Source of the DNA: Pseudomonas aeruginosa PAO1
Lineage (GTDB): Bacteria; Pseudomonadota; Gammaproteobacteria; Pseudomonadales; Pseudomonadaceae
Length of the DNA stretch: 64,000 nt
Assembly: GCF_000006765.1 (NCBI RefSeq)
Contig: NC_002516.2
Reading direction: 5' to 3' (one strand)
The position numbers and the translations under genes are program-made. The notes beneath the pieces were generated by a model that was not told the origin of the DNA, did not search any database, and saw nothing but the letters and a program-made list of their open reading frames with translations. This document shows positions 7,241-54,808 of this stretch, piece by piece (the first letter of the stretch is position 1; each line of letters opens with the position of its first letter).

Positions 7241-8029
7241 ATGCGCCCTCTCCTCTTCAGTGCCCTTCTCCTGCTTTCCGGGCATACCCAGGCCAGCGAA
7301 TGGAACGACAGCCAGGCCGTGGACAAGCTATTCGGCGCGGCCGGGGTGAAAGGCACCTTCGTCCTCTACGATGTGCAGCGGCAGCGCTATGTCGGCCATG
7401 ACCGGGAGCGCGCGGAAACCCGCTTCGTTCCCGCTTCCACCTACAAGGTGGCGAACAGCCTGATCGGCTTATCCACAGGGGCGGTTAGATCCGCCGACGA
7501 GGTTCTTCCCTATGGCGGCAAGCCCCAGCGCTTCAAGGCCTGGGAGCACGACATGAGCCTGCGCGACGCGATCAAGGCATCGAACGTACCGGTCTACCAG
7601 GAACTGGCGCGGCGCATCGGCCTGGAGCGGATGCGCGCCAATGTCTCGCGCCTGGGTTACGGCAACGCGGAAATCGGCCAGGTTGTGGATAACTTCTGGT
7701 TGGTGGGACCGCTGAAGATCAGCGCGATGGAACAGACCCGCTTTCTGCTCCGACTGGCGCAGGGAGAATTGCCATTCCCCGCCCCGGTGCAGTCCACCGT
7801 GCGCGCCATGACCCTGCTGGAAAGCGGCCCGGGCTGGGAGCTGCACGGCAAGACCGGCTGGTGCTTCGACTGCACGCCGGAACTCGGCTGGTGGGTGGGC
7901 TGGGTGAAGCGCAACGAGCGGCTCTACGGCTTCGCCCTGAACATCGACATGCCCGGCGGCGAGGCCGACATCGGCAAGCGCGTCGAACTGGGCAAGGCCA
8001 GTCTCAAGGCTCTCGGGATACTGCCCTGA
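7241..8029 (+). CDS. poxB: Class D beta-lactamase, OXA-50 family
   Basis: STYK, SNV, KTG motifs; signal peptide MRPLLFSALLLL; 262 aa from ATG 7241. Confidence 0.97.
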   Translation: MRPLLFSALLLLSGHTQASEWNDSQAVDKLFGAAGVKGTFVLYDVQRQRYVGHDRERAETRFVPASTYKVANSLIGLSTGAVRSADEVLPYGGKPQRFKAWEHDMSLRDAIKASNVPVYQELARRIGLERMRANVSRLGYGNAEIGQVVDNFWLVGPLKISAMEQTRFLLRLAQGELPFPAPVQSTVRAMTLLESGPGWELHGKTGWCFDCTPELGWWVGWVKRNERLYGFALNIDMPGGEADIGKRVELGKASLKALGILP

Positions 8030-12789: not shown

Positions 12790-13533
12790 ATGCCTGCCGC
12801 CATACGCATCCTTCTCCTGGCCCTGGCCGTGCTTGCCGGCATCGGTGCCGCTGCCATCCAGGCCGAGGATACGCCCTGCGCCACCGCCGCGGAATGCAAC
12901 ACGCGCGGCACCCAGGCTTATCGACAGGGGAGTTATCCACAGGCGCTGGACGCCTTCGCCTGGCAATTGCGCCTGGCCGAGCGCCAGGAACAGGGCGGAG
13001 CCGACTCGGAACAGGCGCTGAACAATCTCGCGCTGACCAGCCTCAAGGCCGGGCAACCGGGACGCGCCCGCGCCTGGATGAACCTGGCGCTGGATCGCGG
13101 CTACAGCGGCAAGGCCACGCGCTACAACCTGGAACAGGTTGCCCTGAAAGTCGACTATCCGTCCCTCCAGGGCCTCGCCGGGCACTACCTGCGCTACGCC
13201 GGGCAGGCCGAATGGGAAAGCCTGCAGATCGAACCGGTGAAGGGCGGCTACCAGGCGAGCTTCGCCCTGATGCGCATCGGCAATCCGGAGAAACTGATGG
13301 AATATGGGCCCGCGGCGGTCGGCGAGTTGTCCGGTCGGCTGGAGGGGCAAGGCGCGCTCTACCGGCTGCGCAGCGAAGGCCTGGGCGCCGGCTGCAGCCT
13401 GCTGGTATGGCAGGAAGGCATCGACCTGCGAGTGGTGGAGAGCCTTGGCGGGGACTGCCAGGGTTACGGCGGCATGGGCATCGCCGCCGCCGGTAACTGG
13501 GTGAAGATATCCAGTCAGGCCAGGGACGACTGA
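12790..13533 (+). CDS. Secreted TPR-like hypothetical protein
   Basis: Signal peptide; helical repeats GTQAYRQGSYPQA and ALNNLALTSLKAG. Confidence 0.7.
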   Translation: MPAAIRILLLALAVLAGIGAAAIQAEDTPCATAAECNTRGTQAYRQGSYPQALDAFAWQLRLAERQEQGGADSEQALNNLALTSLKAGQPGRARAWMNLALDRGYSGKATRYNLEQVALKVDYPSLQGLAGHYLRYAGQAEWESLQIEPVKGGYQASFALMRIGNPEKLMEYGPAAVGELSGRLEGQGALYRLRSEGLGAGCSLLVWQEGIDLRVVESLGGDCQGYGGMGIAAAGNWVKISSQARDD

Positions 13534-13580: not shown

Positions 13581-14339
13581 TCAGCGGCCAGCGGACAGGC
13601 CGAAGTCCACCGCCAGGTCGGCGCCCGTGATCGCTTCGGCCTGAGGGCCGCAGAGATACCAGACCAGCTCGGCGACTTCTTCCGGGCGGATGAAGCGTGC
13701 CGCCTTGCCCTGTGGATAATCCTTCAGCAGCGCGCGCTTGTAGCCATCCGGATTGCCCATCCCATAGCGTTCGGCCTGGTAGTCGAGCATCGGCGTGGCG
13801 ATATCCGCCGGCGACACGGCGTTGACCCGCACGCCCTGCTCGGCCAGTTCCAGCGCCAGGGTCTTGCTCAGCATGGTAAGCGCCGCCTTGCTCGCGCAAT
13901 ACGCCGCCGAACCCCGGTAGGCCTGGCGTCCGGAGTCGCTGGAGATGTTGACGATGCTGCCCTGGTTTTCCTTCAGGTAGGGAATCGCGGCCTGGCACAT
14001 GTAGAAGGAGGCCTTGAGGTTGACTCCCAGGACCAGGTCGAAATCCTCCTCGGTGAAGTTTTCCACAGGCCCCTCGCGCCAGACGCCCGCGGCATTCACC
14101 AGGGCGTCGAGACGTCCGGTACGGGCGAGAATCTTCGACATCAGGGTATGGCAGTTATCCGCGCTGCGCAGGTCGGCGACCCCGCTGGCGTCCAACGGCA
14201 CCTGCGCGTTCAGCGCGTGCAGGCCCTCCTTATCCACATCCGTGGCGGCGATGCGCCAATGACTCTGGGCGAAACGCTTGGCGATTGCCCGGCCCAAGCC
14301 GCCGGCTGCACCAGTGATAAGAACGACGGGCGTGCTCAT
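13581..14339 (-). CDS. Short-chain dehydrogenase/reductase
   Basis: TGAAGGLG, NAAG, YCASK. Confidence 0.92.
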   Translation of the reverse strand: MSTPVVLITGAAGGLGRAIAKRFAQSHWRIAATDVDKEGLHALNAQVPLDASGVADLRSADNCHTLMSKILARTGRLDALVNAAGVWREGPVENFTEEDFDLVLGVNLKASFYMCQAAIPYLKENQGSIVNISSDSGRQAYRGSAAYCASKAALTMLSKTLALELAEQGVRVNAVSPADIATPMLDYQAERYGMGNPDGYKRALLKDYPQGKAARFIRPEEVAELVWYLCGPQAEAITGADLAVDFGLSAGR

Positions 14340-14433: not shown

Positions 14434-15801
14434 TCAGGCCTGGTTGAGATACCAGCGCCAGTCCTGCTCGCCGACCTCGCCCATGAAGGCACGGTATTCG
14501 GCCTGCTTGATCGCCAGGTAGATCTTCAGGAAATCCTCGCCGAGCGCCTCGCGCGCCCAGGCCGAGCCCTCCAGCGCGCGCAGCGCGGTCAGCCAGTCGC
14601 TCGGCAACGCCTGGGTGGCTTGAGCGTAGCCGTTGCCAGTGATCGGCGCACCGGGGTCGAGTCGCTCGCGAATACCCAGGCGCACCGCCGCGAGCAACGC
14701 CGCCGCCGCCAGGTAGGGATTGGCGTCGGCGCCGCAGATGCGGTGCTCGATGTGCCGGCTGGACGCCGGGCCGCCGGGAACCCGCAGCGACACGGTGCGG
14801 TTGTTGATTCCCCAGGTCGGCGCCAGCGGCGCGTAGCTGTTCGCCTGGAAGCGGCGGAACGAGTTGGCGTTCGGACAGAACAGCGCCAAAGACTCCAGCA
14901 GGCACGCCTTCATTCCACCGATGGCCTGGCGCAGCAGCGGGGTCCCGGCCGGGTCCTCGCTGGCGAACAGATTGTTGCCAGCGGCGTCGGCCAGGCTGAC
15001 GTGCAGGTGCAGGCCGCTGCCGGAAAGATCGGCGAACGGCTTGGCCATGAAGCAGGCCTGCAACCCATGGCGATTCGCCACGCCCTTGACCAGGCGCTTG
15101 TAGCGCACGCCTTCGTCGATCGCCTGGAGCGTGTCGAAGCGATGCTGCAGGGTAATTTCCACCTGCCCCGGCGCGTACTCCGAAATCGCCGTGCGCGCCG
15201 GCAGGCCCTGGGCCTCGCAGGCGGCATACAAGTCATCGAGGAATGGCTGCAACTGCTCCAGCTCGTAGACGCCATAGACCTGGGTCGCCCGCGGCCGCTG
15301 GCCATTCATCTGTAACGCCGGCAACGGCCGGCCGTCGCTGTCGCGTTCGCGGTCGAGCAGGTAGAACTCCAGCTCCACCGCCATCACCGGGTGGAAACCC
15401 TCCGCCTGCAGGCTGTGGATAACCCGCTGCAACACATGCCGGGGATCGCCCGCCGCGGCCGGTAGCCCGAGCTCGGGATGCATGCTTACCTGCACCTGGC
15501 CGGTCGGTGACTGCCGCCAGGGTTGCAGGGTCAGGCTGCCGGGCAGCGGGAAGGTCCAGCAATCGGCATCGCCGACGTCCCAGACCAGGCCGGTCTCCTC
15601 GACGTCATCGCCATTGATGGTCAGGCCGAGGATGGTGCTCGGCAGCGGCCGCCCGCTTTCGTAGACCGCCAGCAGCTCGTCGCGATGCAGCAGCTTGCCG
15701 CGCGGCACGCCGTTGGCGTCGATCAGGAACAGCTCGATGCTGCGCACCTCGGGGTGTGCGGCGAGGAACTCGCGGGCTTCCCGCGGATCGGCGAAATGCA
15801 T
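14434..15801 (-). CDS. pauA6: Gamma-glutamyl-amine ligase (GS family)
   Basis: DANGVPRGK, ELEFYL, EYAPGQVE, GSGLHLHVS, HIEHRICGADANPYL. Confidence 0.88.
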   Translation of the reverse strand: MHFADPREAREFLAAHPEVRSIELFLIDANGVPRGKLLHRDELLAVYESGRPLPSTILGLTINGDDVEETGLVWDVGDADCWTFPLPGSLTLQPWRQSPTGQVQVSMHPELGLPAAAGDPRHVLQRVIHSLQAEGFHPVMAVELEFYLLDRERDSDGRPLPALQMNGQRPRATQVYGVYELEQLQPFLDDLYAACEAQGLPARTAISEYAPGQVEITLQHRFDTLQAIDEGVRYKRLVKGVANRHGLQACFMAKPFADLSGSGLHLHVSLADAAGNNLFASEDPAGTPLLRQAIGGMKACLLESLALFCPNANSFRRFQANSYAPLAPTWGINNRTVSLRVPGGPASSRHIEHRICGADANPYLAAAALLAAVRLGIRERLDPGAPITGNGYAQATQALPSDWLTALRALEGSAWAREALGEDFLKIYLAIKQAEYRAFMGEVGEQDWRWYLNQA

Positions 15802-15802: not shown

Positions 15803-17197
15803 TCAGGCCTCCCGCGCGCCGGGTATGGCGAGCAGCTCGCCGAGCGCCTCGTCGAGGCTGGAGAGCAGGCGGTCGACATCTTCTTCGCGAGTGTCCGGGC
15901 AACACAGGGTCATGTTGTGGAACGGCGTGATGAGGATGCCGCGGTTGATCAGATACAGGTGCAAGGCCATCTGCAGGCTGTCGTGGAACGCCGCCTCGGC
16001 GGCCGCGCCGTCGCGTGGGGGTTGCGGGCAGAACTGGAACTCGCTGCGCGCGCCGAGCTCGGTCACCGACCAGGCCAGGCCGTGCTTGTGGATAATCCTG
16101 CGGAAGCCCTCGGCCAGACGCGCCGCCAGGGGCAGCATGTGGGCGTAGGCGGTATCGGTCATCACCTCTTCCAGGTTGGCGCGCATACAGCGCATCGCCA
16201 GGGCGTTGGCCGACAGCGTGGTACCCATGCCGCTGTGGCCGTGGCCTTCGCTCTGCTCGCTGGCACGTGCCCTGGCCAGTTGCATGGCGCTGGCCATCGC
16301 CGCGCTGCAACCATACACCGAGCACGGTACGCCGCCGGCGATCGGCTTGCCGAGGGTGATGAAGTCCGGCTCGAGCTTCCAGGCGCGGGTACAGCCGCCA
16401 GGACCTGTGGAGATGGTGTGGGTCTCGTCGATGATCAGCAGCGTGCCGTGACGACGGGTCAGCTCGCGTAGCTTCTGGTGGAAGCCGGGTTGCGGCAGGA
16501 CCATGCCGATGTTGGTCATCGCCGGCTCGCAGAGCACGGCGGCCACGTCTTCGCCGGCCAGCGCCCGCTCCAGGGCCTGGAGGTCGTTGAACGGCACCGC
16601 GCGGCTGAACTGGGTGAGGTCGTGGGCCTGGCCGAGCAGGCCGGAGCGATGCACGGTGCGGCCGTCGCGGCAGCGAACCAGGGTGTCGTCGACCGTGCCG
16701 TGGTAGCAACCGTCGAATACCAGCACCACCTTGCGACCGGTGATCGCACGCGCCCAGCGCAGGACGAAGCGGTTGGCGTCGGTAGCGGTGGTCGCTACCT
16801 GCCAGAACGGCAGGCCGAAGCGCTGCGCCAGCAACTCGCCTGCGACGATGGCATCCTCCCCCGGAAGCATGGTGGTCAGGCCGTTCGCGCCCTGCTCGGC
16901 GAGCGCCCGGGCGATCGGCGCCGGAGAATGGCCGAACATGCTGCCGGTATCGCCCAGGCAGAAGTCCACGTAGGCGTGGCCGTCCACATCATGGAAACGC
17001 GCGCCGTGGGCACGCGCCACGAACAGCGGACAGGGTGTTGACCAATCGCTCATCCAGTGCATCGGTACGCCGTCGAACAAGGCGCGCCGGGCTCGCTCGG
17101 CGAGCGCGACGGACTGTGGATTCTGCGCAAGGAAACGTTGCTGCTCGCGGGCCATGAAGGTTTCCACGGCGGCTTCGGCGATGCCACTGGCGGTCAT
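15803..17197 (-). CDS. Class III PLP aminotransferase
   Basis: DFCLGDTG, IIDETHT, TLGKPIAGG (PLP lysine); GAGGTG RBS before ATG 17197. Confidence 0.9.
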   Translation of the reverse strand: MTASGIAEAAVETFMAREQQRFLAQNPQSVALAERARRALFDGVPMHWMSDWSTPCPLFVARAHGARFHDVDGHAYVDFCLGDTGSMFGHSPAPIARALAEQGANGLTTMLPGEDAIVAGELLAQRFGLPFWQVATTATDANRFVLRWARAITGRKVVLVFDGCYHGTVDDTLVRCRDGRTVHRSGLLGQAHDLTQFSRAVPFNDLQALERALAGEDVAAVLCEPAMTNIGMVLPQPGFHQKLRELTRRHGTLLIIDETHTISTGPGGCTRAWKLEPDFITLGKPIAGGVPCSVYGCSAAMASAMQLARARASEQSEGHGHSGMGTTLSANALAMRCMRANLEEVMTDTAYAHMLPLAARLAEGFRRIIHKHGLAWSVTELGARSEFQFCPQPPRDGAAAEAAFHDSLQMALHLYLINRGILITPFHNMTLCCPDTREEDVDRLLSSLDEALGELLAIPGAREA

Positions 17198-22918: not shown

Positions 22919-23066
22919 CTCGCCTGCACCTGGTGTCGCTATCGGACCCTTTGCCCTGAAGGATCGGCGGATTTCCGCTTATCCACACTCCCGGTCGGCG
23001 GACTCCCGCTCGGCCAAGACCACCCCGCTCCTCTTCCAACCCAGTCCCCACGCGGCTTTCCCGCGT

Positions 23067-24481: not shown

Positions 24482-24529
24482 TTGAGCCTCGTGCTCACGG
24501 CCCCGACACACTCCGGGCCTTTTTATCCA

Positions 24530-24565
24530 CAGGACGGCGACCTTCGGGTCGCCGTCCTGCTTTTT
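24530..24565 (+). terminator. Strong intrinsic terminator (13-bp stem, UUCG loop), preceded by a weaker one at about 24499-24524
   Basis: CAGGACGGCGACC-TTCG-GGTCGCCGTCCTG-CTTTTT. Confidence 0.75.
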
Positions 24566-26017: not shown

Positions 26018-26979
26018 TCATTCCGCGACCATCCGACACGCCAGGAACGCCTCTTCGAGCGCCTCTTCATCCGCGCCTGCGGCGAGGATCAGTTCCAGCC
26101 GATTATCCCGCCGCCACGAGGACTTGCCCCAGTTATCCACAAACGGCGCGGCATTCGCTGCATACCAACCGTCCGCGCAATGCAGCACCGCCTTGGCTCG
26201 CCGCAGTCCGGACAGACGGTTCAGCCAGGCGTCCACTGCGGCCCGATCGAAACGCACCGACGGCGCCAGCCGATGGCGAACTGGCCGTCCTGCTCGCGCA
26301 CGGCGCGCAGCGGTCGCTCGGCAAGCAGCACCGTTCCCAACTGAGCAGGCGCCTCCGGCAGGGCCGCCCAGGTCGTCGCGCTACCTTCCCCGGCAACGCT
26401 GGTCGGCAGATCGCGCAATGCCAGGTGACCGCGCACGCTCCAGCGCAACGGCAGGACCGGCAGGCGCGCACGCACGGCGCAGCGCTGCGTCGCGTCGAGC
26501 GTTTCGGATTTGTTCAGCAGCAACATGCCGGCCGCTTCCAGCGCCTGTTCCTGTGCCTCCGGCAGCGGTTGGCCGGAGGCCAGCGCGGCGGCATCCAGCA
26601 CCACTACCAGGGGTTGCAGGGCCAGGACGCCGGACCAGGGAGGAGCCTGCAGCTGTTTCCACAGCGCCTGCGGATGTCCCAACCCGGATGGTTCGATGAA
26701 CAGCCGGTCCGGCCGTGCCCGACGCAACAAGCGACCGAGCCCCACCTGGAACGGCACGCCATTGACGCAGCAGAGGCACCCGCCCGCCACCTCGCCGATG
26801 GCCACGCCGTCGACGTCCGTGGCCAGCAGCGCGGCATCCAGGCCGATCTCGCCGAACTCGTTGACCAGCACCGCCCAGCGCTCGCCCGCCGGCTTCTGCG
26901 CCAGCAGCGAGCGGATCAGGCTGGTCTTGCCGGCCCCCAGGGGGCCGCCGATCAGGTGTGTGGGTATCTCTCGAAGCAT
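26018..26979 (-). pseudogene. COG0523/CobW-family GTPase split by a frameshift near 26262-26266
   Basis: GPLGAGKT, GCLCC, EPSG in the 26221-26979 ORF; C-domain (RAKAVLH...NRLELI) continues in another frame 26018-26257; total 962 bp. Confidence 0.75.
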
Positions 26980-27602: not shown

Positions 27603-28244
27603 TCAGGCAAGCCAGTCCAGGGTCAACAGCAGGCGCGCCAGCCCAGGCTCCGCTCGCGGCGAGCGATGCACCAGCCCGGCACCTTCGTTACCCTCCCAGC
27701 GTTCGCCCTTGAGCAGCGCCACGTCGCCCGTGGACAAGCTGTGGATAAGCTGTTCGTCGACAACTTCGGCCTGCGCTCCGCCAAGCAGCCGACGGTCCAG
27801 GCCGGACTCGTCCAGCCATTCGCTGGCGGCGCCCTGGTAGGTGGTGACCAGCCGCAGCGGCACGTGGTCGACGTGGAAACGCGGGCACATCGGTTTATCC
27901 AGAACGCGCAGGCGCAGGCCGATACGCCGCGCCCCGGTCAGGCAGGAGAAGGCCTCGACCAGCCAGCCCAGGTCGTCGAGGAAATCGGTTTGTCCCGGCA
28001 GTTGCTGCGCGTCGAGCAGGCCGTCCAAGACGGGTAGCCGTTCCTCTTCCATCTCCAGCGTCTGGCTCAGCGCCAGTCCCGGCCGGTTGCGCACCAGGGC
28101 GGCGGCGAAGTCGCGCAGCGCCGGGCTCAACCGGCGTGTCCAGACCGCCAGGTTGACGCCCTCGCGAAGCACCTCGGCCAGCACCTGGGGGTCGTCATCG
28201 AACGCCTGGCGCGGCAACGGTTTTTCCTGCGGCAGTGCGCTCAT
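27603..28244 (-). CDS. DUF1826 family protein
   Basis: [32 protein letters not shown]. Confidence 0.85.
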
Positions 28245-31661: not shown

Positions 31662-32558
31662 ATGAATGCCTTGACGCTTCCCGATATCGCCCGCCAGACC
31701 ACCACCGCCGATCTTCCCCTGGACTGGGTCGGCATGCAGGGCATCGCCCTTCCCGTGCAGATCGGCGGGCAGAGGGTCGCCGCCGAAGCCGATGCCGGTG
31801 TCAGCCTGGACGACCCGCAGGCCCGCGGCATCCATATGTCGCGCCTCTACCTGGCGCTGGCCGAACTGGAACAGGGCGAGCTGGACCTTTCCTGCCTGCG
31901 CGCCGTCCTGCAACGCTTCCTCGACAGCCACGCCGGCCTGTCGCGTCGCGCCTACCTGCGCCTACGCCTCGCGCCGCTGCTGCGGCGTCCGGCGCTGGTC
32001 AGCCCGCTGAGCGGCTGGAAACGTTATCCACTGGTGCTGGACACGCGCCTGGAAGGCGATGACTTCCAGGCCGAAGTCCATCTCGAGCTGACCTACTCCT
32101 CGACCTGCCCCTGTTCGGCGGCACTGGCCCGGCAATTGATCCAGGAGCGCTTCGACCAGGACTTCGCCGGACAGCCGCTCGATCATGCCAGCGTGCTCGC
32201 CTGGCTCGGCAGCAGCGCCGGCATCGTCGCCACCCCGCACAGCCAGCGCAGCAGCGCGCACCTGCGCATCGGCCTGGCGGAAGACTGCATCGGACTGCCC
32301 CTGGAAGAGCTGGCGGATCTCGGCGAAAGCGCCCTCGGCACCGCGGTGCAGACTGCGGTGAAACGCGCCGACGAGCAGGCCTTCGCCCTCGCCAACGGGC
32401 AGAACCTGATGTTCTGCGAGGACGCGGTGCGCCGGCTGCACCGCGCCCTGCAGGGTTATCCACAGGCGAGCCGGTTCTCCATACGGGTCGTCCATGCGGA
32501 AAGCCTGCATGCCCATGACGCCGTCGCCGAAAGCCATTGGCAGCGAGGTGCAGCATGA
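31662..32558 (+). CDS. folE2: GTP cyclohydrolase IB
   Basis: GIHMSRL, YSSTCPCS, ESLHAHDA. Confidence 0.93.
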   Translation: MNALTLPDIARQTTTADLPLDWVGMQGIALPVQIGGQRVAAEADAGVSLDDPQARGIHMSRLYLALAELEQGELDLSCLRAVLQRFLDSHAGLSRRAYLRLRLAPLLRRPALVSPLSGWKRYPLVLDTRLEGDDFQAEVHLELTYSSTCPCSAALARQLIQERFDQDFAGQPLDHASVLAWLGSSAGIVATPHSQRSSAHLRIGLAEDCIGLPLEELADLGESALGTAVQTAVKRADEQAFALANGQNLMFCEDAVRRLHRALQGYPQASRFSIRVVHAESLHAHDAVAESHWQRGAA

Positions 32559-33117: not shown

Positions 33118-34455
33118 ATGCAAAGCCTGCTGATCCGCAATGCCCGGATGGTCAACGAGGGGCAGGTACGCGAAGGCGATCTGCTGGTCCGCCACGGTCG
33201 CATCGAACGCATCGCCGGCTGCCTGGAAAACTGCGGCGCCAGCCGGGAGATCGATGCCGCCGGACGCTACCTGCTGCCGGGAATGATCGACGACCAGGTG
33301 CACTTCCGCGAGCCGGGTTATCCACAGAAGGGCTCGATCGCCAGCGAATCCCGCGCCGCCGTGGCGGGCGGCATCACCAGTTTCATGGACATGCCCAATA
33401 CCCGCCCGGCGACGCTGAGCCTCGAAGCGCTGGCGGAAAAGAAGCGCCTCGCCGCCGCCCATAGCGTGGCCAACTACGGTTTCCACTTCGGCGTCAGCCG
33501 CGACAACCTCGACACCGTGGCCGCCCTCGATCCACGCGAGGTCGCCGCGGTGAAGGTGTTCATGGGCGCCTCCACCGGCGACATGCTGGTGGACGACCTG
33601 CCGACCCTGGAGCGCCTGTTCGCCAGCGTTCCGACCCTGCTGCTGAGCCATTGCGAAGACACGCCGCGGATCGAAGCCAACCTGGCGCGCTGGCGACAAC
33701 GCTTCGGTGAACGTATTCCGGCAGCCGCCCACCCGCGCATTCGCGACGCCGAGGCTTGCTACCGTTCCACCGCCCTGGCGGTGGAACTGGCGCAACGACA
33801 TGGCACGCTGCTGCATGTCCTGCACTTATCCACAGCGCGTGAACTGGCCCTGTTCGAGGACAAGCCGCTGTGCCAGAAACGCATCACCGCGGAAGTCTGC
33901 GTCCACCATCTGCTGTTCGACGACAGCGACTACGCCCGCCTCGGCCATCTGCTCAAGTGCAACCCGGCGATCAAGAGCCGCGAGGACCGCGACGCCCTGC
34001 GCAGGGCGCTGGCCGGCAACCGCCTGGACGTGATCGGCACCGACCACGCGCCGCACGCCTGGGCCGAGAAGCAGCAGGCTTATCCACAGGCGCCGGCCGG
34101 CCTGCCACTGGTCCAGCATGCGTTGCCGGCACTCCTGGAGCTGGTCCGCGAAGGCTGGCTGTCGCTGGCCACCCTGGTGGCGAAGACCAGCCACCGGGTC
34201 GCCGAACTGTTCGCCATCGCCGATCGCGGTTTCCTCCGCGAAGGTTACTGGGCCGACCTGGTGCTGGTCAGCGAACTGGAGCACCCGGCGCTGGCCAGCG
34301 CCATGCCGCTGCTGTCGCGCTGCAACTGGACGCCGTTCCGCCACCGGGCATTCCACCATCGGATCGATACCACCATCGTCTCCGGGCAACTCGCCTGGCA
34401 CGCGGGACGCCTGTCCGACGATTGCCAGGGACTGCCCCTGCGGTTTTCCCGCTGA
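33118..34455 (+). CDS. pyrQ: Dihydroorotase paralog
   Basis: IDDQVHFREPG, DMPNT, KCNPAI, TDHAPH. Confidence 0.9.
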   Translation: MQSLLIRNARMVNEGQVREGDLLVRHGRIERIAGCLENCGASREIDAAGRYLLPGMIDDQVHFREPGYPQKGSIASESRAAVAGGITSFMDMPNTRPATLSLEALAEKKRLAAAHSVANYGFHFGVSRDNLDTVAALDPREVAAVKVFMGASTGDMLVDDLPTLERLFASVPTLLLSHCEDTPRIEANLARWRQRFGERIPAAAHPRIRDAEACYRSTALAVELAQRHGTLLHVLHLSTARELALFEDKPLCQKRITAEVCVHHLLFDDSDYARLGHLLKCNPAIKSREDRDALRRALAGNRLDVIGTDHAPHAWAEKQQAYPQAPAGLPLVQHALPALLELVREGWLSLATLVAKTSHRVAELFAIADRGFLREGYWADLVLVSELEHPALASAMPLLSRCNWTPFRHRAFHHRIDTTIVSGQLAWHAGRLSDDCQGLPLRFSR

Positions 34456-34499: not shown

Positions 34500-35744
34500 C
34501 TAGCGCAGGGCTTTCACCGCCGCGCCAAGGAAGGCATAGGTCTCCTCCTCGCGATCGTCCATCTCCGGCTTCGGCCAGGCGCTCCAGACCACCGCCACGA
34601 TCTTCTCCTTGCGGTTGATGTAGAGGTACTGGCCGAAGATGCCCTGGGCTTCGAAGGCCCCGCCGTCATGCTCGGGCAGGGCCTTGGCGCCCACCGGGAA
34701 GGTCCACCACTGGTAGCCGTAGCCGAGCGCGTATTCGCCATCGTAGAGCTTGCCCGGGGCCAGGTGGGAAGAAGCCTCGACGCGACTGGCACGATCGACC
34801 CAACCTTCGGGGAGGATACGTTCGCCATCGATCACCCCGTCCTCGAGGACGAACTGGCCGAAGCGGCCATAGTCGCGCAGGGTCGCGCTCAAGCCGCTGC
34901 TGCCGATCTCTTGCCCGGCCGGCGATTCCAGTTGCCAGAAGCCGTCGCTCTCCATGCCCATTCGCGCCCAGATCCGCTCGGACAGGTAGTCGCTCACCGG
35001 AATGCGGGTCGCCGCGTGCAGCAGCTCGCTCTGCAGGTGCGACTCGCCGGTGCTGTAGGTGAAGTGGGTACCGCTCGGGTACTGCCGCGGCAGGCTCGCC
35101 AGCAGCCGCAGGATGCCACCGGGACGTTCGGCGAGCTGGGCGTCGAACATCTGCCGGCGGTCGGACTTCGGATCGCGATAGGTCTCGTTCCAGCGGACCC
35201 CGGAACTCATCTGCAGGACCTGCTCCACCGTCACCCCCTGGTAGGCGGAGCCGGCCAGGCTCGGCAGGTACTTGTCCACAGGCTGGTCGAGAGCCAGCAG
35301 GCCCTGCTGCACGGCGGCGCCCACCAGGGTCGAGGAGATCGACTTGACCACCGAGAACGAGGTCCAGCGCGTCCGTTCGTCGTTGCCCAGGCCGTAGCGC
35401 TCCAGGGCGACCTTGCCATCCTTGAGGATCAGCACGCCGCCAACGCGGTTGCGCCGCATGAAATCGTCGACGCCGTATTCCTCGCCGCCGATCCGGTAGC
35501 GCGGCGCGATGGCCACACCCGCCGGCAGCGGACGGACCTTGGTCCCCTTGTGGATAACCCGGGTCGGATAGACCTTGTCCATGTTCCGGTAGGTGTCCGG
35601 CTGGTATTCCGGGATCAGTTCATAGAGATCGGCGGCACGGCCGATCCGCGGGTTTTCCACAGCCGCGTCGGCGCCGGCCGAGCCGCTTGCCGAGACGAAC
35701 AGTGCCAGCAGGGCCGGCCGGAAGACTGATATACAGCTACGCAT
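34500..35744 (-). CDS. Serine hydrolase, beta-lactamase fold (PA5542/PIB-1-like)
   Basis: Signal peptide, SVVK (SxxK), FTYST, YGYQWW, AQGIFGQ. Confidence 0.85.
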   Translation of the reverse strand: MRSCISVFRPALLALFVSASGSAGADAAVENPRIGRAADLYELIPEYQPDTYRNMDKVYPTRVIHKGTKVRPLPAGVAIAPRYRIGGEEYGVDDFMRRNRVGGVLILKDGKVALERYGLGNDERTRWTSFSVVKSISSTLVGAAVQQGLLALDQPVDKYLPSLAGSAYQGVTVEQVLQMSSGVRWNETYRDPKSDRRQMFDAQLAERPGGILRLLASLPRQYPSGTHFTYSTGESHLQSELLHAATRIPVSDYLSERIWARMGMESDGFWQLESPAGQEIGSSGLSATLRDYGRFGQFVLEDGVIDGERILPEGWVDRASRVEASSHLAPGKLYDGEYALGYGYQWWTFPVGAKALPEHDGGAFEAQGIFGQYLYINRKEKIVAVVWSAWPKPEMDDREEETYAFLGAAVKALR

Positions 35745-35830
35745 GGACGTTTTCCTTATGACCGGAAGCAGCTCCGGCTTCGTCGTTTTTATGGATGTGG
35801 ACTGGCGTCGCAGTGTTATCCACAGGACGT

Positions 35831-36229
35831 TCAGTCGCTCGGGTCCCGTATCGGACACGCCCAGAGTTCGACCGCCGGGCGCTCAGGGTCCGGCGGACCG
35901 ATCCAGCGCGCCAGCGCATCGCAGCGCCCCTGACGGCAGATCCGGTAGTCGCCGGCCTCCGGTGTGCGCCCCAGCCGCAACGGTTGCAGCGGCGGCACCC
36001 CACGGTGGTAATGCCAGGCGCCGTCACGCAGCACGGCGCCCTCGGGAATCTCCATCCCCGCCCCGCTGCCCCGCACCCGGGCCTCTTCCAGCAGCAGGCC
36101 GCGCTCACTCAGGCGATAGTCTTCTTCCCAGAGCACCTTCTCGACCGTGTGTTGCCAGGCCAGGGTGAACGACTGCAGCGGCAGCGTCGCCCAGACGCTG
36201 CCGGCCATGCCCAGACACAGCGCGATCAC
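35831..36229 (-). CDS. DUF1850 family TRAP-associated protein
   Basis: FTLAWQHTVEK...WEEDY, GSGAGME; GTGA overlap with the permease. Confidence 0.75.
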   Translation of the reverse strand: MIALCLGMAGSVWATLPLQSFTLAWQHTVEKVLWEEDYRLSERGLLLEEARVRGSGAGMEIPEGAVLRDGAWHYHRGVPPLQPLRLGRTPEAGDYRICRQGRCDALARWIGPPDPERPAVELWACPIRDPSD

Positions 36230-38250
36230 GCCACCGCCTCGCGCGCACGCTGGCGCCAGAGGTGCCAGCCGATCACCAGCGCGCCGAGGACGAAGCCCAG
36301 CTCGTCGCTGATCGGCAAGGCCAGGACCAGGCTGGCCCCCGCGGCGAACGCCACCAGGCGCTCCCACCAGGCCAGCGGCCCCTGCAGGTAGCCGATGGAA
36401 GCCATGCCCCACAGGCCGATGGCCAGCACCGCCTTGCAGGTGACATAGAGCGTCGCCCCCCAACCGCCTTCCTGCAGCATCAGCGCCGGGGAATACACCG
36501 CCATGAACGGCACCACGAAACCCGCCAGGGCGATGCGCACCGCCCAGAAGCTGATCTTCAATCCCCTTTCCTTGGCGATCGGCGCGGCCGCGAAACAGGC
36601 CAGCGCCACCGGAGGGGTGAGGTCGGCGAGGATGCCGAAGTAGAAGACGAACATGTGCGAGACGATCAGCGGCACCCCCAGTTCCAGCAGCGCCGGCGCG
36701 GCGATGGAGCTGGTGATGATGTAGTTGGGGATGGTCGGGATGCCCATTCCCAGGACCAGGCAGGTGACCATGGTCAGGACCAGCGACAGCAGCAGGTTCT
36801 CCCGTCCCAGGTCGAGCACGTAGCTGGCGAAGGTGGTGGCGATGCCGGTCAGCGAAATCACCCCGATGATGACTCCCACCAGGGTGCAGGCGATGCCCAC
36901 CGGAATCGCATGTCGCGCACCTTCGGCGAGGGCGCGGACGCAGATGCGCAGGGTTTCCCGGCCGCCACGGACGAACCAGCAGGCCAGGGCCAGGGCCGCG
37001 ATCACGACGAAGATCACCCCGATGCCGAGGCGGAAGAACCCCGCGCAGAGCAGCCCCAGCGCCACCCAGAAGGCGATGCGCAGGCCGAGCGAGGACACCC
37101 GCAGGATGATCGCCGAACCGAGGATGACGATGGCGGTCAGCGCCAGGCCGATGGTTCCGGAGAACAGCGGCGTGCGCCCGGAGAACAGCAGCGCGATCAG
37201 CACCAGCAACGGAATCAGCAGGAACCAGCGCTCGCGGACGGCACCCCAGGCGCTCGGACACTGATCGCGCGGCAGGCCCTTTAGATCGGCCCGGCGGGCC
37301 TCGAGGTGGACCATCCAGTACACCGAGCCGAAATACAGCAGGGCCGGGATCAGCGCCGCCTTGGCGATCTCCACGTAGGGGACGTTGATGGTCTCGGCCA
37401 TAATGAACGCCACCGCCCCCATCACCGGCGGCATCAGTTGGCTGCCCATGCTCGCGGTCGCCTCGACGCCGCCGGCGAACGCCGGCTTGTAGCCGAAACG
37501 CTTCATCAGCGGGATGGTGAACTGTCCGGTGGTGACCACGTTGGCCACGCCGGAGCCGGTGATGGTGCCCATCAGCGCCGAGGAGAATACCGAGACCTTG
37601 GCCGGCCCGCCGACCCGGTGACCGAACAGGCCCATGGCGAAATCGGTGAACAGGCGGATCATGCCGGCCTGCTCGAGGAAGGCGCCGAACAGGATGAACA
37701 GATAGATGTAGGTGGCCGATACGTAGGTCGGCGTGCCGTAGAGACCTTCGGTACCGAACGACAGCTGGTTGACGATCTGGTCGAAGCCGTAGCCGCGGTG
37801 GGCCAGGTCGCCCGGCAGGTGTTCGCCGAACAGGCCATAGGCAAGAAACAGCGCGCAGATGATCGGCAAGGCGATGCCCATCACCCGTCGCGCCGCCTCG
37901 AAGACCAGGACGATCAGCACCACGCCGACGACCATGTCGGCCTGGGTCAGCTCTCCGGAGCGCTGGATCAGGTCGCCCTCGAAAACCCACTGGTAGACCG
38001 CCGTGCCCAGGCCGGCCATGCCCAGCAACCAGGCCAGCGGCTGCCAGGGGCGACCTATGCCGAAGGCGGGATAGCTGATGTACACCACCAGCAACAGCAG
38101 TCCGACGTGCATTGCCCGCAGGACCTGGGTGGAAATCAGGGGAAAGGCCGCGGTGACGACCTGGAACACGGAAAAGGCCAGGGCCACGGCGAACAACGCG
38201 CGCGGCCAGTTTTCCGCCTCAAGATGCAGCCCGTTCTGATGATCGCTCAT
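36226..38250 (-). CDS. TRAP transporter 4TM/12TM fusion permease
   Basis: GGPAKV, EATASMGSQLMPPVMGA, TPPVALA. Confidence 0.92.
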   Translation of the reverse strand: MSDHQNGLHLEAENWPRALFAVALAFSVFQVVTAAFPLISTQVLRAMHVGLLLLVVYISYPAFGIGRPWQPLAWLLGMAGLGTAVYQWVFEGDLIQRSGELTQADMVVGVVLIVLVFEAARRVMGIALPIICALFLAYGLFGEHLPGDLAHRGYGFDQIVNQLSFGTEGLYGTPTYVSATYIYLFILFGAFLEQAGMIRLFTDFAMGLFGHRVGGPAKVSVFSSALMGTITGSGVANVVTTGQFTIPLMKRFGYKPAFAGGVEATASMGSQLMPPVMGAVAFIMAETINVPYVEIAKAALIPALLYFGSVYWMVHLEARRADLKGLPRDQCPSAWGAVRERWFLLIPLLVLIALLFSGRTPLFSGTIGLALTAIVILGSAIILRVSSLGLRIAFWVALGLLCAGFFRLGIGVIFVVIAALALACWFVRGGRETLRICVRALAEGARHAIPVGIACTLVGVIIGVISLTGIATTFASYVLDLGRENLLLSLVLTMVTCLVLGMGIPTIPNYIITSSIAAPALLELGVPLIVSHMFVFYFGILADLTPPVALACFAAAPIAKERGLKISFWAVRIALAGFVVPFMAVYSPALMLQEGGWGATLYVTCKAVLAIGLWGMASIGYLQGPLAWWERLVAFAAGASLVLALPISDELGFVLGALVIGWHLWRQRAREAVA

Positions 38251-38324
38251 GCATCGACTCCCTACAGCCGGAAACGCGGGGAACCCGGTCCGCCGCACGG
38301 ACCGGGGCTACGGAGAAACGGGCC

Positions 38325-39284
38325 TCACTCGGGCAGTACGCCCTTCTCCTTGTAGAAGCGCTCGGCGCCGGGATGCAGCGGAATCGGCAGGTTCTTCGCC
38401 GCCTTGTCCAGGGCGATGTCCTTGGCGGCAGCATGGGCGGTGACCAGGCGCGGCAGGTTGTCGAACATCAGCTTGGTCATCTGGTAGGCCAGCTCGTCGC
38501 TGACCCCGGAGTGGCTGACCAGGATATTGTCGATCGCCACCGTCGGCACGTCCTGCTCCTGGCCGTCGTAGGTGCCGGCGGGAATGCTCGCGGCGTGGTA
38601 GGCCGGGCTGTCGATCTTCGCCACCACGTCCGCCGGGATCGCGACGAAGGTGATCGGCATGGTCGAGGCCAGGTCGCGGATGGCCGCCATGCCCAGGCCG
38701 GAGGATTGCAGCGTAGCGTCGAGCTGGCGGTTCTTGATCAGCTCCACCGACTCGGCGTAGGGCAGGTACTCCACCTTGCCCATGTCCTCGTAGCTCAGGC
38801 CGGCAGCCTTGAAGATCGCCCGGGCGTTCAGCTCGGTACCGCTCTTGGGCGCGCCCACCGAAATGCGCTTGCCTTTCAGGTCGGCCAGGGTCTTGATGCC
38901 CGAGGCTTGGCTGGCCACTACCTGGATATAGTTCGGATAGGTATTGCCGATAGCCCGCAGCTTCTTCAACGGCGCCTTGAAGCCGGCGTCGGCGACCCCG
39001 TTCCAGGCGTCGGCGACCGAGTCGCCCAGCGCCAGCGCCAGTTCTCCACGCCCGGCCTGCAACAGGTTGAGGTTCTCGACCGAAGCCTTGGTGGCCTGCA
39101 CCGAGGTTTTCGCGCCCTGGATATCGTGCCCGTAGATCTGCGAGAGGCCGACCCCTATGGGGTAATAGACCCCGCTGGTGCCGCCGGTGAGGATATTGAT
39201 GAAGGTCGGCGCGGCAAAGACCGAGGTACTGAAGGTCACCGTTGCGGCAAGCGTGAAAAGACCGAAGCGTCTGCTCAGCGACAT
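38325..39284 (-). CDS. TAXI-family TRAP solute-binding protein
   Basis: TGGTSGVYY, ASVENL, PLHPGAERFY. Confidence 0.92.
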   Translation of the reverse strand: MSLSRRFGLFTLAATVTFSTSVFAAPTFINILTGGTSGVYYPIGVGLSQIYGHDIQGAKTSVQATKASVENLNLLQAGRGELALALGDSVADAWNGVADAGFKAPLKKLRAIGNTYPNYIQVVASQASGIKTLADLKGKRISVGAPKSGTELNARAIFKAAGLSYEDMGKVEYLPYAESVELIKNRQLDATLQSSGLGMAAIRDLASTMPITFVAIPADVVAKIDSPAYHAASIPAGTYDGQEQDVPTVAIDNILVSHSGVSDELAYQMTKLMFDNLPRLVTAHAAAKDIALDKAAKNLPIPLHPGAERFYKEKGVLPE

Positions 39285-39447
39285 GGGAAGTCTCCTGTTC
39301 TTATCGTTGTTGTCGCGCTGTCGCGGAAGCGTCCCGGCTTCCTTCGACCGCGCAGGACTTCGTGCAGACTAGACCGCCCCGCCACGCAGGACAATCAGCA
39401 AGGACCGATTGCGCGACCGGCTCCGCAAGGGAGCCGGTCGCCGGCGT

Positions 39448-40632
39448 TCAGGCGTACAGGTCGCGCCGCGACCAGGGCAGCTCGTGGGAGCCATCCTCGT
39501 GGGGGCGAATGGCGAGGATCTGGTGCAGGTTGATCCAGCCGCGCTTGAAGCCGTAGGCGCATCCGGCCAGGTACAGCCGCCAGATCCGCAAGGTTTCCTC
39601 GGGCACCAGGCGAGCCGCCTCCTTCAGCCTGGCTTCCAGGTTGGCGCTCCAGAAGTCCAGGGTCCGGGCGTAGTGCAGACGCAGGCTTTCCACGTCGACT
39701 ACTTCCAGCCCGGCTTCGCTCATCCGCGCCACCGCCAGCGACAGGTGCGGCAGCTCGCCGTGGGGAAACACGTAGCGATCGATGAAGTCGCCGGCCCCCT
39801 TGCCAACCGGGCGGCCGTCGGTGTAGCGCGAGGTGATGCCGTGGTTCATCACCAGGCCGCCGGGACGCACCGCCTCGTACAGTTGCTGGAAGTACAGCCC
39901 CAGGTTGGCGTGCCCGACGTGCTCGAACATGCCGACGCTGACCACCTTGTCGAAGCGGCCATCGCGCGGCAGGTCGCGGTAATCCAGCAGCTTGAGGGTG
40001 ACTCGGTCCTCCAGGCCTTCGGCCTTGACTCGCTCCCGGCCGAGCGCCAGCTGCTCCTTGCTCAATGTGATGCCGGTGACCTCGACGCCGAACTCGCGAG
40101 CGGCCAGGCGCGCCAGCCCTCCCCAACCGCAACCGACATCGAGCAGCTTCTCGCCCGGCTGCAAACGCAGCTTGCGGCACAGGTGACGGAGCTTGGCCAG
40201 TTGCGCGGTGGCGAGGTCTTCCTTGCCGGTCTCGAAATAAGCGCAGGAATAGACCATTTCCGGATCCAGCCAGAGCTGGTAGAAGTCGTTGGACAGGTCG
40301 TAGTGGTAATGGATGGCTTCGGCGTCTGTGTCCTTGTCGTGGCTTTCGCGAACCGGCGGCGCGCCGCCATCGGGTTCGCCGAGCGCTTCGCTGAGGGCAT
40401 CGCCGATACCGATGACCTGGCTGATCGGTCCTTCGATGTCGAGACGCTTCTCGACGTAGGCCTTGCCCAGCGCATCGAGGCTGGGATGGGTGATCTCGGT
40501 TAGCAGCGAGGGGTCGCGAATGACCATGGTTACCTGTGGATCCGGCCCCAGATCGAACGCCTGAGCATCGCCGATGCGGATCCGCAACGGCAGTTGCAGG
40601 GACAGCAACTCAGAGGGGAGCTGTGCAATCAT
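39448..40632 (-). CDS. cfa: Cyclopropane-fatty-acyl-phospholipid synthase family methyltransferase
   Basis: HYDLSNDFY, LDVGCGWG, SVGMFEHVG. Confidence 0.9.
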   Translation of the reverse strand: MIAQLPSELLSLQLPLRIRIGDAQAFDLGPDPQVTMVIRDPSLLTEITHPSLDALGKAYVEKRLDIEGPISQVIGIGDALSEALGEPDGGAPPVRESHDKDTDAEAIHYHYDLSNDFYQLWLDPEMVYSCAYFETGKEDLATAQLAKLRHLCRKLRLQPGEKLLDVGCGWGGLARLAAREFGVEVTGITLSKEQLALGRERVKAEGLEDRVTLKLLDYRDLPRDGRFDKVVSVGMFEHVGHANLGLYFQQLYEAVRPGGLVMNHGITSRYTDGRPVGKGAGDFIDRYVFPHGELPHLSLAVARMSEAGLEVVDVESLRLHYARTLDFWSANLEARLKEAARLVPEETLRIWRLYLAGCAYGFKRGWINLHQILAIRPHEDGSHELPWSRRDLYA

Positions 40633-40863
40633 GCCAAACCTCCTGGTCACAAGACGGGAACACTATAGTCCAGTACCTGATAGAGTTTTGCTATCGACTA
40701 CTTAGCCTCCTATCTATCGATGCAAAACCCCTGAGCACTCCGATTCAGGTTAGCAGCCAGTCTGCCCATGGATAGTTGACAGTTCTGATATACAAACTTT
40801 CCCTTGCTGCAATAACGGAATGACGCATACACCCTGTCAAAGGAAGCGGAAGCGACATAAGGA

Positions 40864-41493
40864 ATGCCGATGAACGAGACCGTATCCCTCGAAACACGCG
40901 AAGTACGCTTTCTCTCCGTGTTCGACTTCGACGGTACCCTGACATACCGAGACAGCTTCGTGCCCTTCCTGCGTTTCGCCTTCGGCAACCGGGTGTTCGT
41001 CCGCCGCATGCTGCGCATGGCAGGACCCAGCCTGGCCTATCTCTGCCGGCGTATCGACCGCGACGACCTGAAGGCGCGCCTGATCGCCACCTTCCTCACC
41101 GATGTGCCCGTACATGTGCTGGAAGAGCGGGCGCTGGCCTACCAGAACCGCTTCTGGGAAACACTGATGCGTCCCCACGCATTGACCGCGGTGGCCGACC
41201 AGGTCAGCAGCGGCAGCACCGTGACCATCTGTTCCGCCTCCCCTTCGCTGCTACTCAGGCCGTTCGCCGAGAAGCTCGGCGTGCACCTGATCGCCACCGA
41301 GCTGGAAGTGGTAGACGGCGTACTGACCGGCAGGATCGTCGGCCGCAACTGCCGGCGCGACGAGAAAGTCTGCCGCCTGGAGCGGCACTACGGTCCGCTG
41401 ACCCAATACTCCCTGCGCGCCTGGGGCGACTCGCGCGGCGATACGGAACTGCTGGCGGCGGCGCTGGAGCGCTTCTGGAAACCGTTCCGCTGA
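40864..41493 (+). CDS. HAD-IB family hydrolase
   Basis: FDFDGTL, CSAS, WGDSRGD. Confidence 0.88.
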   Translation: MPMNETVSLETREVRFLSVFDFDGTLTYRDSFVPFLRFAFGNRVFVRRMLRMAGPSLAYLCRRIDRDDLKARLIATFLTDVPVHVLEERALAYQNRFWETLMRPHALTAVADQVSSGSTVTICSASPSLLLRPFAEKLGVHLIATELEVVDGVLTGRIVGRNCRRDEKVCRLERHYGPLTQYSLRAWGDSRGDTELLAAALERFWKPFR

Positions 41494-41850
41494 CCGGTTG
41501 CCGGACATGGTCTGATCCGAGTATCAATCCAAAGTGGGAGCGAACGTCGCCATATCCGGCAGGAGTGCAAAATTCGGCTAACGTTCCGGTAGGATAGTTT
41601 CTCCAGCACTCCCGAGCCCCGAGCGGATTCCGGGGAGAGCCGCTTGAGGCGATACGCCGAAGCCTTCTTCGAAATCGTGCACTGGCCCCCAGAATCTCCC
41701 TCCGTTCTCTTCTTTTCTCCCCGCCGTTCCTGCATCAACCAAACAGCCATGCCCTCCATAGCCCGAGCGGTTCATCCCTGACCCTGGCGCCGGCTCCACG
41801 AGCCGGCGCCCCCTTGGCGTTCGTCCGCTCATTCAGCCAAAGAGAACATC

Positions 41851-43056: not shown

Positions 43057-43110
43057 CAGCGAGCGCCGGGGCCGCATGCCTGCCCCGGCTTCTCGGGCAC
43101 GCGGCCGGCG

Positions 43111-44946
<1,836 letters not shown>

Positions 44947-44961
44947 GGGGTCTTTCTCCTT

Positions 44962-45735: not shown

Positions 45736-45737
45736 TT

Positions 45738-45776
45738 AAGTTTCGTTTCGAAAGAAAAGTGTGCGAATCAAAACTT
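45738..45776. promoter_or_regulatory. Candidate GlmR operator (inverted repeat)
   Basis: AAGTTTCGTTTCG-N13-CGAATCAAAACTT, 11/13 arm match, abutting the glmR start. Confidence 0.55.
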
Positions 45777-45802
45777 ATCCGGCGCTTCCCGTCAATGACT
45801 TT

Positions 45803-46312: not shown

Positions 46313-46325
46313 CCGTGCCGCTCCG

Positions 46326-47690: not shown

Positions 47691-47749
47691 GGACTGGACT
47701 ACCGTTCCTGGTGGTCACAGGCAAAACCTGTGAGTGAAGATGCAAAACG

Positions 47750-47779
47750 AAAAAAGGGTAGCCCACAGGCTACCCTTTT
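47750..47779. terminator. atp operon terminator (bidirectional form)
   Basis: AAAAGGGTAGC-N6-GCTACCCTTTT. Confidence 0.8.
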
Positions 47780-47810
47780 CCCTGACACCGCTAGAAGTAC
47801 CGGCTGGAAA

Positions 47811-48236: not shown

Positions 48237-48277
48237 ACGCTTGCCTCACATGAGCGCCCGTCGCCGGGCGCACAGGA

Positions 48278-49684
<1,407 letters not shown>

Positions 49685-50545: not shown

Positions 50546-50595
50546 TTGACACCTATCGGGTTAGCAGGCGGGAGCCTCGCGGCTCCCGCTGCGGC

Positions 50596-52140
<1,545 letters not shown>

Positions 52141-52158
52141 GCCGCTGCCCCTTCAAAC

Positions 52159-52695: not shown

Positions 52696-52706
52696 AGCGC
52701 CCTCGC

Positions 52707-53234: not shown

Positions 53235-54808
<1,574 letters not shown>

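Follow-up and report, generated by a model that had tools for sequence, protein, structure and literature searches.

Why should a chromosomal beta-lactamase gene of Pseudomonas aeruginosa contain codons that are rare in the genes around it? The question is raised by poxB, which encodes a 262 amino acid protein at positions 7241..8029 (+) of a 64-kb stretch of the PAO1 chromosome (NC_002516.2; the whole stretch is hereafter called the window). The gene was assigned to the OXA-50 family of class D beta-lactamases from its open reading frame and from 99% identity to P. aeruginosa proteins bearing that family name. Two exact copies of the DnaA-box sequence TTATCCACA lie within it: one on the sense strand, read as TTA TCC ACA (Leu-Ser-Thr, L-S-T; 7469..7477, +), and one on the template strand, read as GTG GAT AAC (V-D-N; 7684..7692, -) within the in-frame string GTT-GTG-GAT-AAC. 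An earlier note on this DNA proposed that rare codons are retained in poxB and in other genes to spell such boxes, giving a dual code that includes a resistance gene. Our analysis suggests that the two sites belong to a field of boxes beside the replication origin, kept by selection on the DNA itself, in which poxB is only one of the host genes.

The window covers the final 64 kb of the P. aeruginosa chromosome, to the left of oriC. This placement follows from the gene order at its right end (atp operon, parB, parA, gidB, gidA, mnmE and yidC, all on the minus strand) and from the OXA-50 family beta-lactamase and the dihydroorotase, which are 99–100% identical to P. aeruginosa proteins. The right end falls at yidC, just short of rpmH and oriCI, and replication from oriCI enters the window from that end.

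Over-representation of DnaA boxes in the window

The exact sequence is found at 23 sites in the window, against 0.12 expected from dinucleotide shuffles (maximum 1) and 0.09 under a third-order Markov model; the enrichment is about 200-fold against three different nulls. The looser DnaA-box consensus TTWTNCACA, as it is given by Wawrzyniak et al. 2026 (PMC13438810), is matched by 30 copies. Ten boxes had been listed in the earlier note, and all of its coordinates and reading frames were confirmed, namely those in poxB, in pyrQ (33826), in mnmE (61152) and at five Tyr-Pro-Gln (Y-P-Q) sites. One-mismatch variants are likewise enriched (28 against 3.4 expected) and form a narrow set, being concentrated in ATATCCACA, TTGTCCACA, TTTTCCACA, TTATCAACA and TTATGCACA. 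These differ from the exact box at positions 1, 3, 5 and 6, and changes at positions 2, 4, 7, 8 and 9 are mostly present in 0–1 copies. Two members of the set, TTTTCCACA and TTATGCACA, fit the published TTWTNCACA.

Genes were called with a codon log-odds model, and each box was then mapped onto the called genes. Seventeen of the 23 exact boxes fall inside genes, or 18 if a frameshifted cobW-like gene is counted. The sense strand carries 14 of the 17, read as L-S-T (three), Y-P-Q (five) or x-I-H-x (six); the other three are on the template strand and are each read as V-D-N or V-D-K. This 14:3 split is what codon constraints permit, because one antisense frame holds a stop, and the 23 boxes as a whole use the two strands without bias (13 on + and 10 on -). 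By the gene calls six boxes are intergenic, among them the one at 26133 that falls in the cobW-like gene. Intergenic DNA is over-represented, with 26% of the boxes in 11.5% of the sequence.

The boxes do not form compact clusters of closely spaced cooperative sites and most stand alone, 100 bp to several kb from the next. No global periodicity was seen in their spacing within the window (P = 0.78). Neighbour distances of about 150–175 bp give a weak signal, the fullest 16-bp bin containing 7 of them where 3.7 are expected (P about 0.002); the pairs and runs that pile up at this spacing are at 13537-14230, 27591-27740, 32456-32608, 35653-35816 and 60018-61152. A dispersed repeat element was considered as the source of the boxes and rejected, since the flanks of the 23 sites are alike only in a purine after the box and in G-rich positions -3/-2.

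Codon choice and peptide contexts

Spelling a box forces the use of rare codons (TTA, ACA, CCA, TAT, CTT, GTT) because the genome is about 66% G+C. The rarity that had been claimed for four of these codons is confirmed by codon usage in the window genes, where TTA accounts for 0.3% of Leu, ACA for 3.1% of Thr, CCA for 4.4% of Pro and TAT for 23% of Tyr. All window genes together contain seven TTA codons, three of them inside boxes. When proteins were held fixed and codons resampled from window usage, 0.25 genic boxes were expected, and synonymous permutation within each gene gave 0.43, against the 17 seen; the highest genic count in 2000 runs of these nulls was 3.

Peptide contexts able to spell a box synonymously number 26 in all window genes. 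The earlier note had suggested counting how often such peptides use the box-forming codons, and within the window 17 of the 26 do so. No box-capable context occurs in a box-free stretch at about 36–57.5 kb. As 17 of the 26 contexts are realised and none lies in the box-free stretch, the peptides themselves are enriched because of the box.

Conservation and turnover across Pseudomonadaceae

A genome scan with MnmE returned 80 loci, 42 of them from Pseudomonadaceae; P. aeruginosa itself was not among the loci returned. The Pseudomonadaceae loci, which are mostly about 21 kb long, carry 0–16 exact boxes each, most of them at least five, and those of Enterobacterales and Vibrio carry 1–3. The best conserved intragenic box is in gidA (mnmG) at 58705..58713 (-), where it is read as CTT ATC CAC ATC (L-I-H-I). 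In a codon alignment, 34 of 41 Pseudomonadaceae have the CTT-ATC-CAC-A box at this codon, and none of 12 outgroups spells it despite an identical GidA peptide. The site ranks 31st of 1891 nine-base windows for conservation, and the main conserved box sites are in the top 2–5% of such windows. Synonymous conservation is above that of the neighbouring codons, with third positions next to the gidA box varying freely. A variant box, ATATCCACA, is found in gidA at 58837..58845 (+) as CTG TGG ATA; it includes a genus-conserved rare ATA codon and is shared by 36 of 41 sequences. Boxes at the same codons are seen also in gidB (27/41 and 14/41 sequences), parA (27/41 and 19/41), mnmE (TTA-TCC-ACA at 61152..61160, -; L-S-T; 17/43) and yidC (11/41), and another box recurs in a stretch that was taken as dnaA from its position. 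In gidA and mnmE, the few rare codons conserved across the genus fall at boxes.

The peptides at the box sites differ between species as well. Of the 27 mnmE sequences with L-S-T, 17 carry the exact box and ten differ from it by one base, TTA being used in 26 of the 27; sequences that lack L-S-T have other residues instead, for example L-A-G, L-A-A or L-A-E. The dihydroorotase-like gene pyrQ has three box sites, and at all three its residues differ from those of 20 orthologues. The site at 33318..33326 (+), kept in 11 of 11 P. aeruginosa strains, reads G-Y-P-Q here against G-A-P-D/E in the orthologues; that at 33826..33834 (+; TTA TCC ACA) reads L-S-T against mostly L-T-T or L-T-S with common codons; and the third, at 34080..34088 (+), reads A-Y-P-Q. 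Two boxes were gained in the present lineage, one in mnmE (60518..60526, -; CTT ATC CAC AAT), where P. aeruginosa has L-I-H-N and other species L-T-L-A/S, and one on the template strand of gidA (57600..57608, +), where A-V-D-N replaces residues such as G-A-E-D and the box is found in only 3 of 41 sequences. P. aeruginosa lacks the genus-wide gidB and parA boxes, which were lost through I-to-V and V-to-I changes.

In pyrQ, mnmE and gidA, amino acids have thus been changed to make the box, and sites turn over between lineages while regional density persists. That the boxes track amino-acid changes and turn over in this way argues that selection acts on the DNA itself, giving a dual code in genes, and all tests that could be run agree. 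The earlier proposal of selection on the motif rather than the protein is accordingly well matched by the codon nulls, the 17 of 26 contexts, the genus-wide positional conservation with its outgroup contrast, and the near-chance density of boxes in the rest of the genome. Its statement that rare codons are retained describes poxB, a case of pure codon choice, but is too weak for pyrQ, mnmE and gidA, in which the residues themselves are altered.

Some features of the same loci are of separate interest. At the 3' end of gidB (about 56.68 kb) an ATA codon is kept in 40 of 41 sequences and is not part of a DnaA box; internal parA promoters have been reported there. In parB (54972-55844), conserved rare CGA, GGA and GGG codons near codons 5-8 and 206-208 likewise have no DnaA box to account for them. 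Seven Pseudomonadaceae loci (L004, L006, L008, L011, L017, L022 and L030) have 2.8–6.3 kb inserted between mnmE and gidA, with extra exact boxes in most, and a Geopseudomonas locus (L034) stands out by its five boxes on the opposite arm.

The two boxes of poxB

Both peptides read at the poxB boxes, L-S-T and V-V-D-N, occur commonly among OXA-50-like enzymes, and both boxes are therefore pure codon choice. The two are kept in six P. aeruginosa strains (99.5% identity). For a sister lineage (L081) one contig covers poxB, with 87% nucleotide identity in the gene and 23% divergence at third positions. The first box is intact in this contig and three flanking codons are changed synonymously; the second has GAC for GAT, which converts it to the enriched variant TTGTCCACA, one base off. 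Nothing links the boxes to resistance. They have no specific bearing on it and tell nothing of resistance levels, the OXA-50 gene being just one of many hosts of the field.

Elsewhere on the L081 contig, an exact box (8985-8993) is located inside a hairpin between pfkB-like and dedA-like genes; the corresponding position of the window (9462-9470) has TCATCCACA.

Variation within P. aeruginosa

The within-species set comprised 11 sequences, two of them at 96.3% identity, that cover ten boxes. The box at 22979..22987 (+), which is intergenic and upstream of an MFS transporter gene, was left out, leaving nine; it is exact in this strain only, and all 13 other P. aeruginosa sequences (L083, L087, L171 and L176-L185) have TTATCCACT in its place. 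In the nine boxes, three singleton changes were found and no common or clade-fixed change, against 3.7 expected of the latter kind. The background comprises 237 singletons and 916 other changes (Fisher P = 0.009 for the boxes, with small numbers). Box-breaking variants exist within the species but seem to stay rare.

Boxes are also removed by deletions. Two strains (L083 and L087) are without about 8 kb (window about 9.2–17.2 kb) that carry five exact boxes, and a 141-bp in-frame deletion in the pyrQ of L168 (window 33940-34080) ends at the 34080 box and removes it. Each box is thus dispensable on its own and under weak selection, a combination that fits a collective function.

In four other strains an extra acyltransferase gene is present between window positions 9411 and 9476.

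Distribution on one flank of the origin

The boxes of the window fall in two zones, at 57.6-61.2 kb (gidA, oriCII and mnmE) and at 7.4-35.8 kb. They are separated by a 21.7-kb gap (35825..57482) over glmS, glmU, the atp operon, parAB and gidB, in which no exact or enriched-variant box is present. The gidA-mnmE spacer (59201..60389) is the known second origin-like region, oriCII, and contains six variant and two exact boxes, the latter at 60018..60026 (-) and at 60359..60367 (+), 23 bp from the mnmE stop. The window therefore has several boxes, above chance, that are near the minimal origin and outside it. Across 35 Pseudomonadaceae loci, oriCI carries 3.7 boxes per kb. The coding segments between dnaA and parB have 0.4-1.0 per kb and the opposite arm, past dnaA, 0.056 per kb; on the atp side, zero boxes were found in 145 kb summed over 35 Pseudomonadaceae.

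The distal zone, 28-57 kb from the origin-side end of the window, appears to be confined to the P. aeruginosa lineage. In P. fluorescens (80-100 kb from the record end) and in P. indica, the syntenic regions hold 1 box per 21 kb, and no box is found there at the P. aeruginosa distal positions. Two of these positions are in a glutamine-synthetase-family gene (15414..15422, -; GTT ATC CAC AGC, V-I-H-S), where the box is absent in the syntenic P. indica orthologue, and in a class III aminotransferase gene (16087..16095, -; ATT ATC CAC AAG, I-I-H-K), where it is also absent in P. indica. A metagenome scan with pyrQ for closer relatives of the distal field gave nothing above 77% identity (partial) or 74% (full length). 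Four candidates were rejected: P0124 proved to be an allele of P. aeruginosa carrying a deletion, P0241 a P. aeruginosa assembly in which many gene calls are fragmented and which is 98.8% identical to the window, and P0242 and P0248 are paralogues in other contexts. In six metagenome loci (L090, L091, L093, L094, L097 and L100), relatives of pyrQ from other taxa have an equally spaced pair or trio of exact boxes about 5.4-9.3 kb upstream, which may belong to an origin of their own or to a DnaA-regulated promoter.

For the P. aeruginosa genome as a whole, 129 copies of TTWTNCACA, coding and intergenic and enriched on the left arm, are given in PMC13438810. Measured against that figure, the 30 copies of the window make up about a quarter of the total in 1% of the chromosome. 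Since roughly 40-100 copies per genome would arise by chance, the rest of the genome is near chance level.

A candidate field for initiator titration

The existence of origin-proximal DnaA boxes in P. aeruginosa and their enrichment on the left arm were already known. The selection at codon and peptide level, the positional conservation in gidA, gidB, parA, mnmE and yidC, the turnover, and the distal field with poxB seem to be new, as they are described in no paper that we found. The findings established here (enrichment, selection at the coding level, conservation, turnover, restriction to one side and avoidance of the atp operon) are best accounted for, with a probability that we put at roughly 0.55, by a dispersed, one-sided, origin-proximal DnaA-binding field that acts as a titration buffer of initiation.

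In this reading the TTATCCACA sites are genuine consensus DnaA boxes of the high-affinity type, kept by selection on the DNA, both in genes and in the spacers, to the left of oriC. Residues are altered to L-S-T, Y-P-Q, x-I-H-x or V-D-N/K wherever the protein can bear the change. The field would comprise a core common to the genus, running from dnaA to parB with oriCI and oriCII inside it, and the P. aeruginosa-lineage zone 28-57 kb out. Its boxes would be copied within the first minutes of a replication round, so that strong sites beside the origin would be abruptly doubled; the doubled sites would soak up free DnaA, and re-initiation would be buffered or delayed. Single consensus DnaA boxes bind both nucleotide forms of DnaA tightly. 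The presence of single consensus boxes beside the origin, their doubling after initiation and the precedents in Escherichia coli and Bacillus subtilis lead us to favour an initiation-buffering field, in which DnaA would occupy the boxes in vivo and act negatively on initiation. The atp operon is highly expressed, and its avoidance may mean that boxes are traded off against codon optimality and against transcription across bound sites.

Comparison with known systems

The DnaA-box clusters (DBCs) of B. subtilis are compact, mostly intergenic and also regulate neighbouring genes. Those proximal to oriC restrain initiation (Okumura et al. 2012; PMC3245932), and they resemble the field described here in that the boxes are near but outside the origin and are thought to bind DnaA collectively, with single clusters dispensable and their effects additive (PMC3245932). 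The window boxes differ in being mostly isolated, in lying in reading frames and in extending over about 55 kb of one arm. The datA locus of E. coli, which works through IHF-dependent ATP hydrolysis, is non-coding, whereas the window boxes are mostly in genes. Enrichment of origin-proximal DnaA boxes and titration have both been shown in E. coli (Olivi et al. 2025; PMC12371093). As in our case, boxes there are enriched near oriC beyond composition, which has been read as positive selection for early-replicated titration sites (PMC12371093). The E. coli excess is, however, mild, at about 2 standard deviations over 10-centisome windows and with degenerate motifs, against about 200-fold for the exact consensus in the window. 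Other DNA motifs under selection within reading frames, for example uptake sequences and skewed architecture-imparting motifs, bias codon choice and local peptides, and are genome-wide and often strand-skewed. The DnaA boxes studied here are instead confined to one origin flank and have no strand skew.

For P. aeruginosa, binding of DnaA to box fragments of oriCII in vitro is described in PMC13438810, where boxes are mapped upstream of and inside gidA, with box 14 in the 3' part of the gene. Boxes 13 and 14 of that map appear to be those at 58705 and 57600 of the window, box 14 being matched by its position. In the accessible text of that paper the boxes are treated as promoter regulators, without codon-level, comparative or population analysis and without the distal field of poxB and pyrQ.

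Evidence against titration and alternative explanations

Several observations weigh against a titration field. E. coli chromatin immunoprecipitation sequencing indicates that DnaA requires paired boxes at a spacing of 2-3 bp (PMC11317965). In the window, 20 of the 23 boxes are without a partner within 12 bp that is better than random, and only three have one with at most two mismatches. A literature search for in vivo DnaA occupancy data in Pseudomonas found none. Single boxes are dispensable, as seen from the 22979 box that is exact in one strain only, from single-nucleotide polymorphisms (SNPs) that some strain carries in three others and from the natural 8-kb deletion. The SNP total inside boxes is not reduced (3 against 4.6 expected); all three are singletons, and the numbers are small. 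Titration alone leaves the use of only one arm unexplained. The distal field is not common to P. indica or P. fluorescens, so that distance from oriC and lineage are confounded, and the distribution of boxes beyond the window is taken from one sentence of PMC13438810, whose genome-wide figure concerns a different strain.

The field could conceivably act positively and make initiation more reliable, as a local DnaA reservoir, a recruitment antenna or a nucleotide-exchange site of the DnaA-reactivating sequence (DARS) kind. All of the sequence evidence for selection would fit this equally well; the field lies next to two origin-like regions, the gidA promoter is activated by DnaA at oriCII (PMC13438810), and the neighbour spacing of 160-175 bp could favour looping. 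We nevertheless consider it unlikely, as the spacing signal is weak and overall periodicity absent, boxes at distances of up to 57 kb are remote for a direct local action, and the origin-proximal clusters tested in B. subtilis restrained initiation (PMC3245932). Quite improbable, in our judgement, is a gene-specific role in which DnaA, as a transcription factor or roadblock, tunes each host gene, poxB included, to the replication cycle. The gidAB-parAB operon is regulated by DnaA through boxes (PMC13438810), and five or six boxes are intergenic, some of them beside gene starts, in agreement with the over-representation of intergenic DNA. As a general rule, however, placement at promoters fails, since only oriCII and perhaps 3-4 intergenic boxes fit it. 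The 17-18 boxes in reading frames are deep in unrelated genes at any position and mostly singletons, the host genes have no common function, the same genes elsewhere are without boxes, and sites move between genes while regional density persists.

A mark of the origin domain, used in chromosome folding or segregation and read by DnaA or by another protein on the arm without the ParB-parS complex, would account for the one-sided distribution conserved across the genus. The map in PMC13438810 places parS 10-20 kb from parAB, near oriCI, and parS would then be on the arm opposite the field. This explanation seems very doubtful to us: the motif is the exact DnaA consensus, its tolerated variants are narrow and two of them fit the published consensus, and the strand skew typical of chromosome-architecture motifs is absent. 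Moreover, we know of no reader protein for the motif other than DnaA. That the boxes have no function at all, and arise by chance or through composition, mutation bias or a dispersed repeat, is barely credible. The sole supporting point is that single boxes can be lost; against it stand the roughly 200-fold excess over three nulls, the lack of common flanks, positional conservation at saturated synonymous sites across the genus, and outgroups that have the identical peptide without the box. Chance or mutation bias is excluded.

Implications

Pseudomonas, to our knowledge, is without the Dam/SeqA sequestration system of enterobacteria. We tentatively suggest that it may control re-initiation mainly via a dispersed, one-sided field of single boxes in genes beside oriC, although this is the less secure part of the proposal. 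If it does, selection on the number of sites would be strong enough to fix rare codons and residue replacements, to make up for lost sites with new ones and to add a second field in the P. aeruginosa lineage, and nature would here offer a clear example of protein sequences shaped by a signal for replication control. Replication-control sites would carry a visible cost in codon optimality and protein sequence, so that codon choice alone reveals them. The boxes also provide a concrete, sequence-defined candidate for how Pseudomonas restrains re-initiation and a list of sites for any map of DnaA occupancy. Selection on the DNA can mislead the silent recoding or codon optimisation of genes near the origin, and also scans of the ratio of nonsynonymous to synonymous substitution (dN/dS) in genes such as poxB, gidA, mnmE or pyrQ.

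Remaining boxes and their host genes

A gene for a 247 amino acid protein of unknown family contains an exact box at 12933..12941 (+), read as xxT TAT CCA CAG (Y-P-Q). A short-chain dehydrogenase gene, assigned from Pfam, has two, one on the sense strand (13711..13719, -; Y-P-Q) and one on the template strand (14230..14238, +; V-D-K). The box at 24523..24531 (+) is intergenic between convergent genes and is kept in 11 of 11 strains. The box at 26133..26141 (+) is also kept in 11 of 11 strains; it is on the template strand (V-D-N) of the C-terminal part of the cobW-like gene. That gene (window 26011-26979, -) is an intact 322 amino acid open reading frame in ten other P. aeruginosa strains and is split here over two frames by one 7-nt indel, either as a strain-specific pseudogene or through a sequence error.

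In a DUF1826 gene the box at 27740..27748 (-) is read as CTT ATC CAC AGC (L-I-H-S); a two-mismatch box is present 2 bp downstream, and singleton changes occur in two strains. The box of a GTP cyclohydrolase (GCHY-1) gene (32456..32464, +; Y-P-Q) has a singleton change in one strain. Finally, a second gene of a beta-lactamase family (PF00144; window 34500-35744, -) contains one exact box (35549..35557, -; V-I-H-K) and two variant boxes, and a further exact box (35816..35824, +) is intergenic and directly upstream of it.

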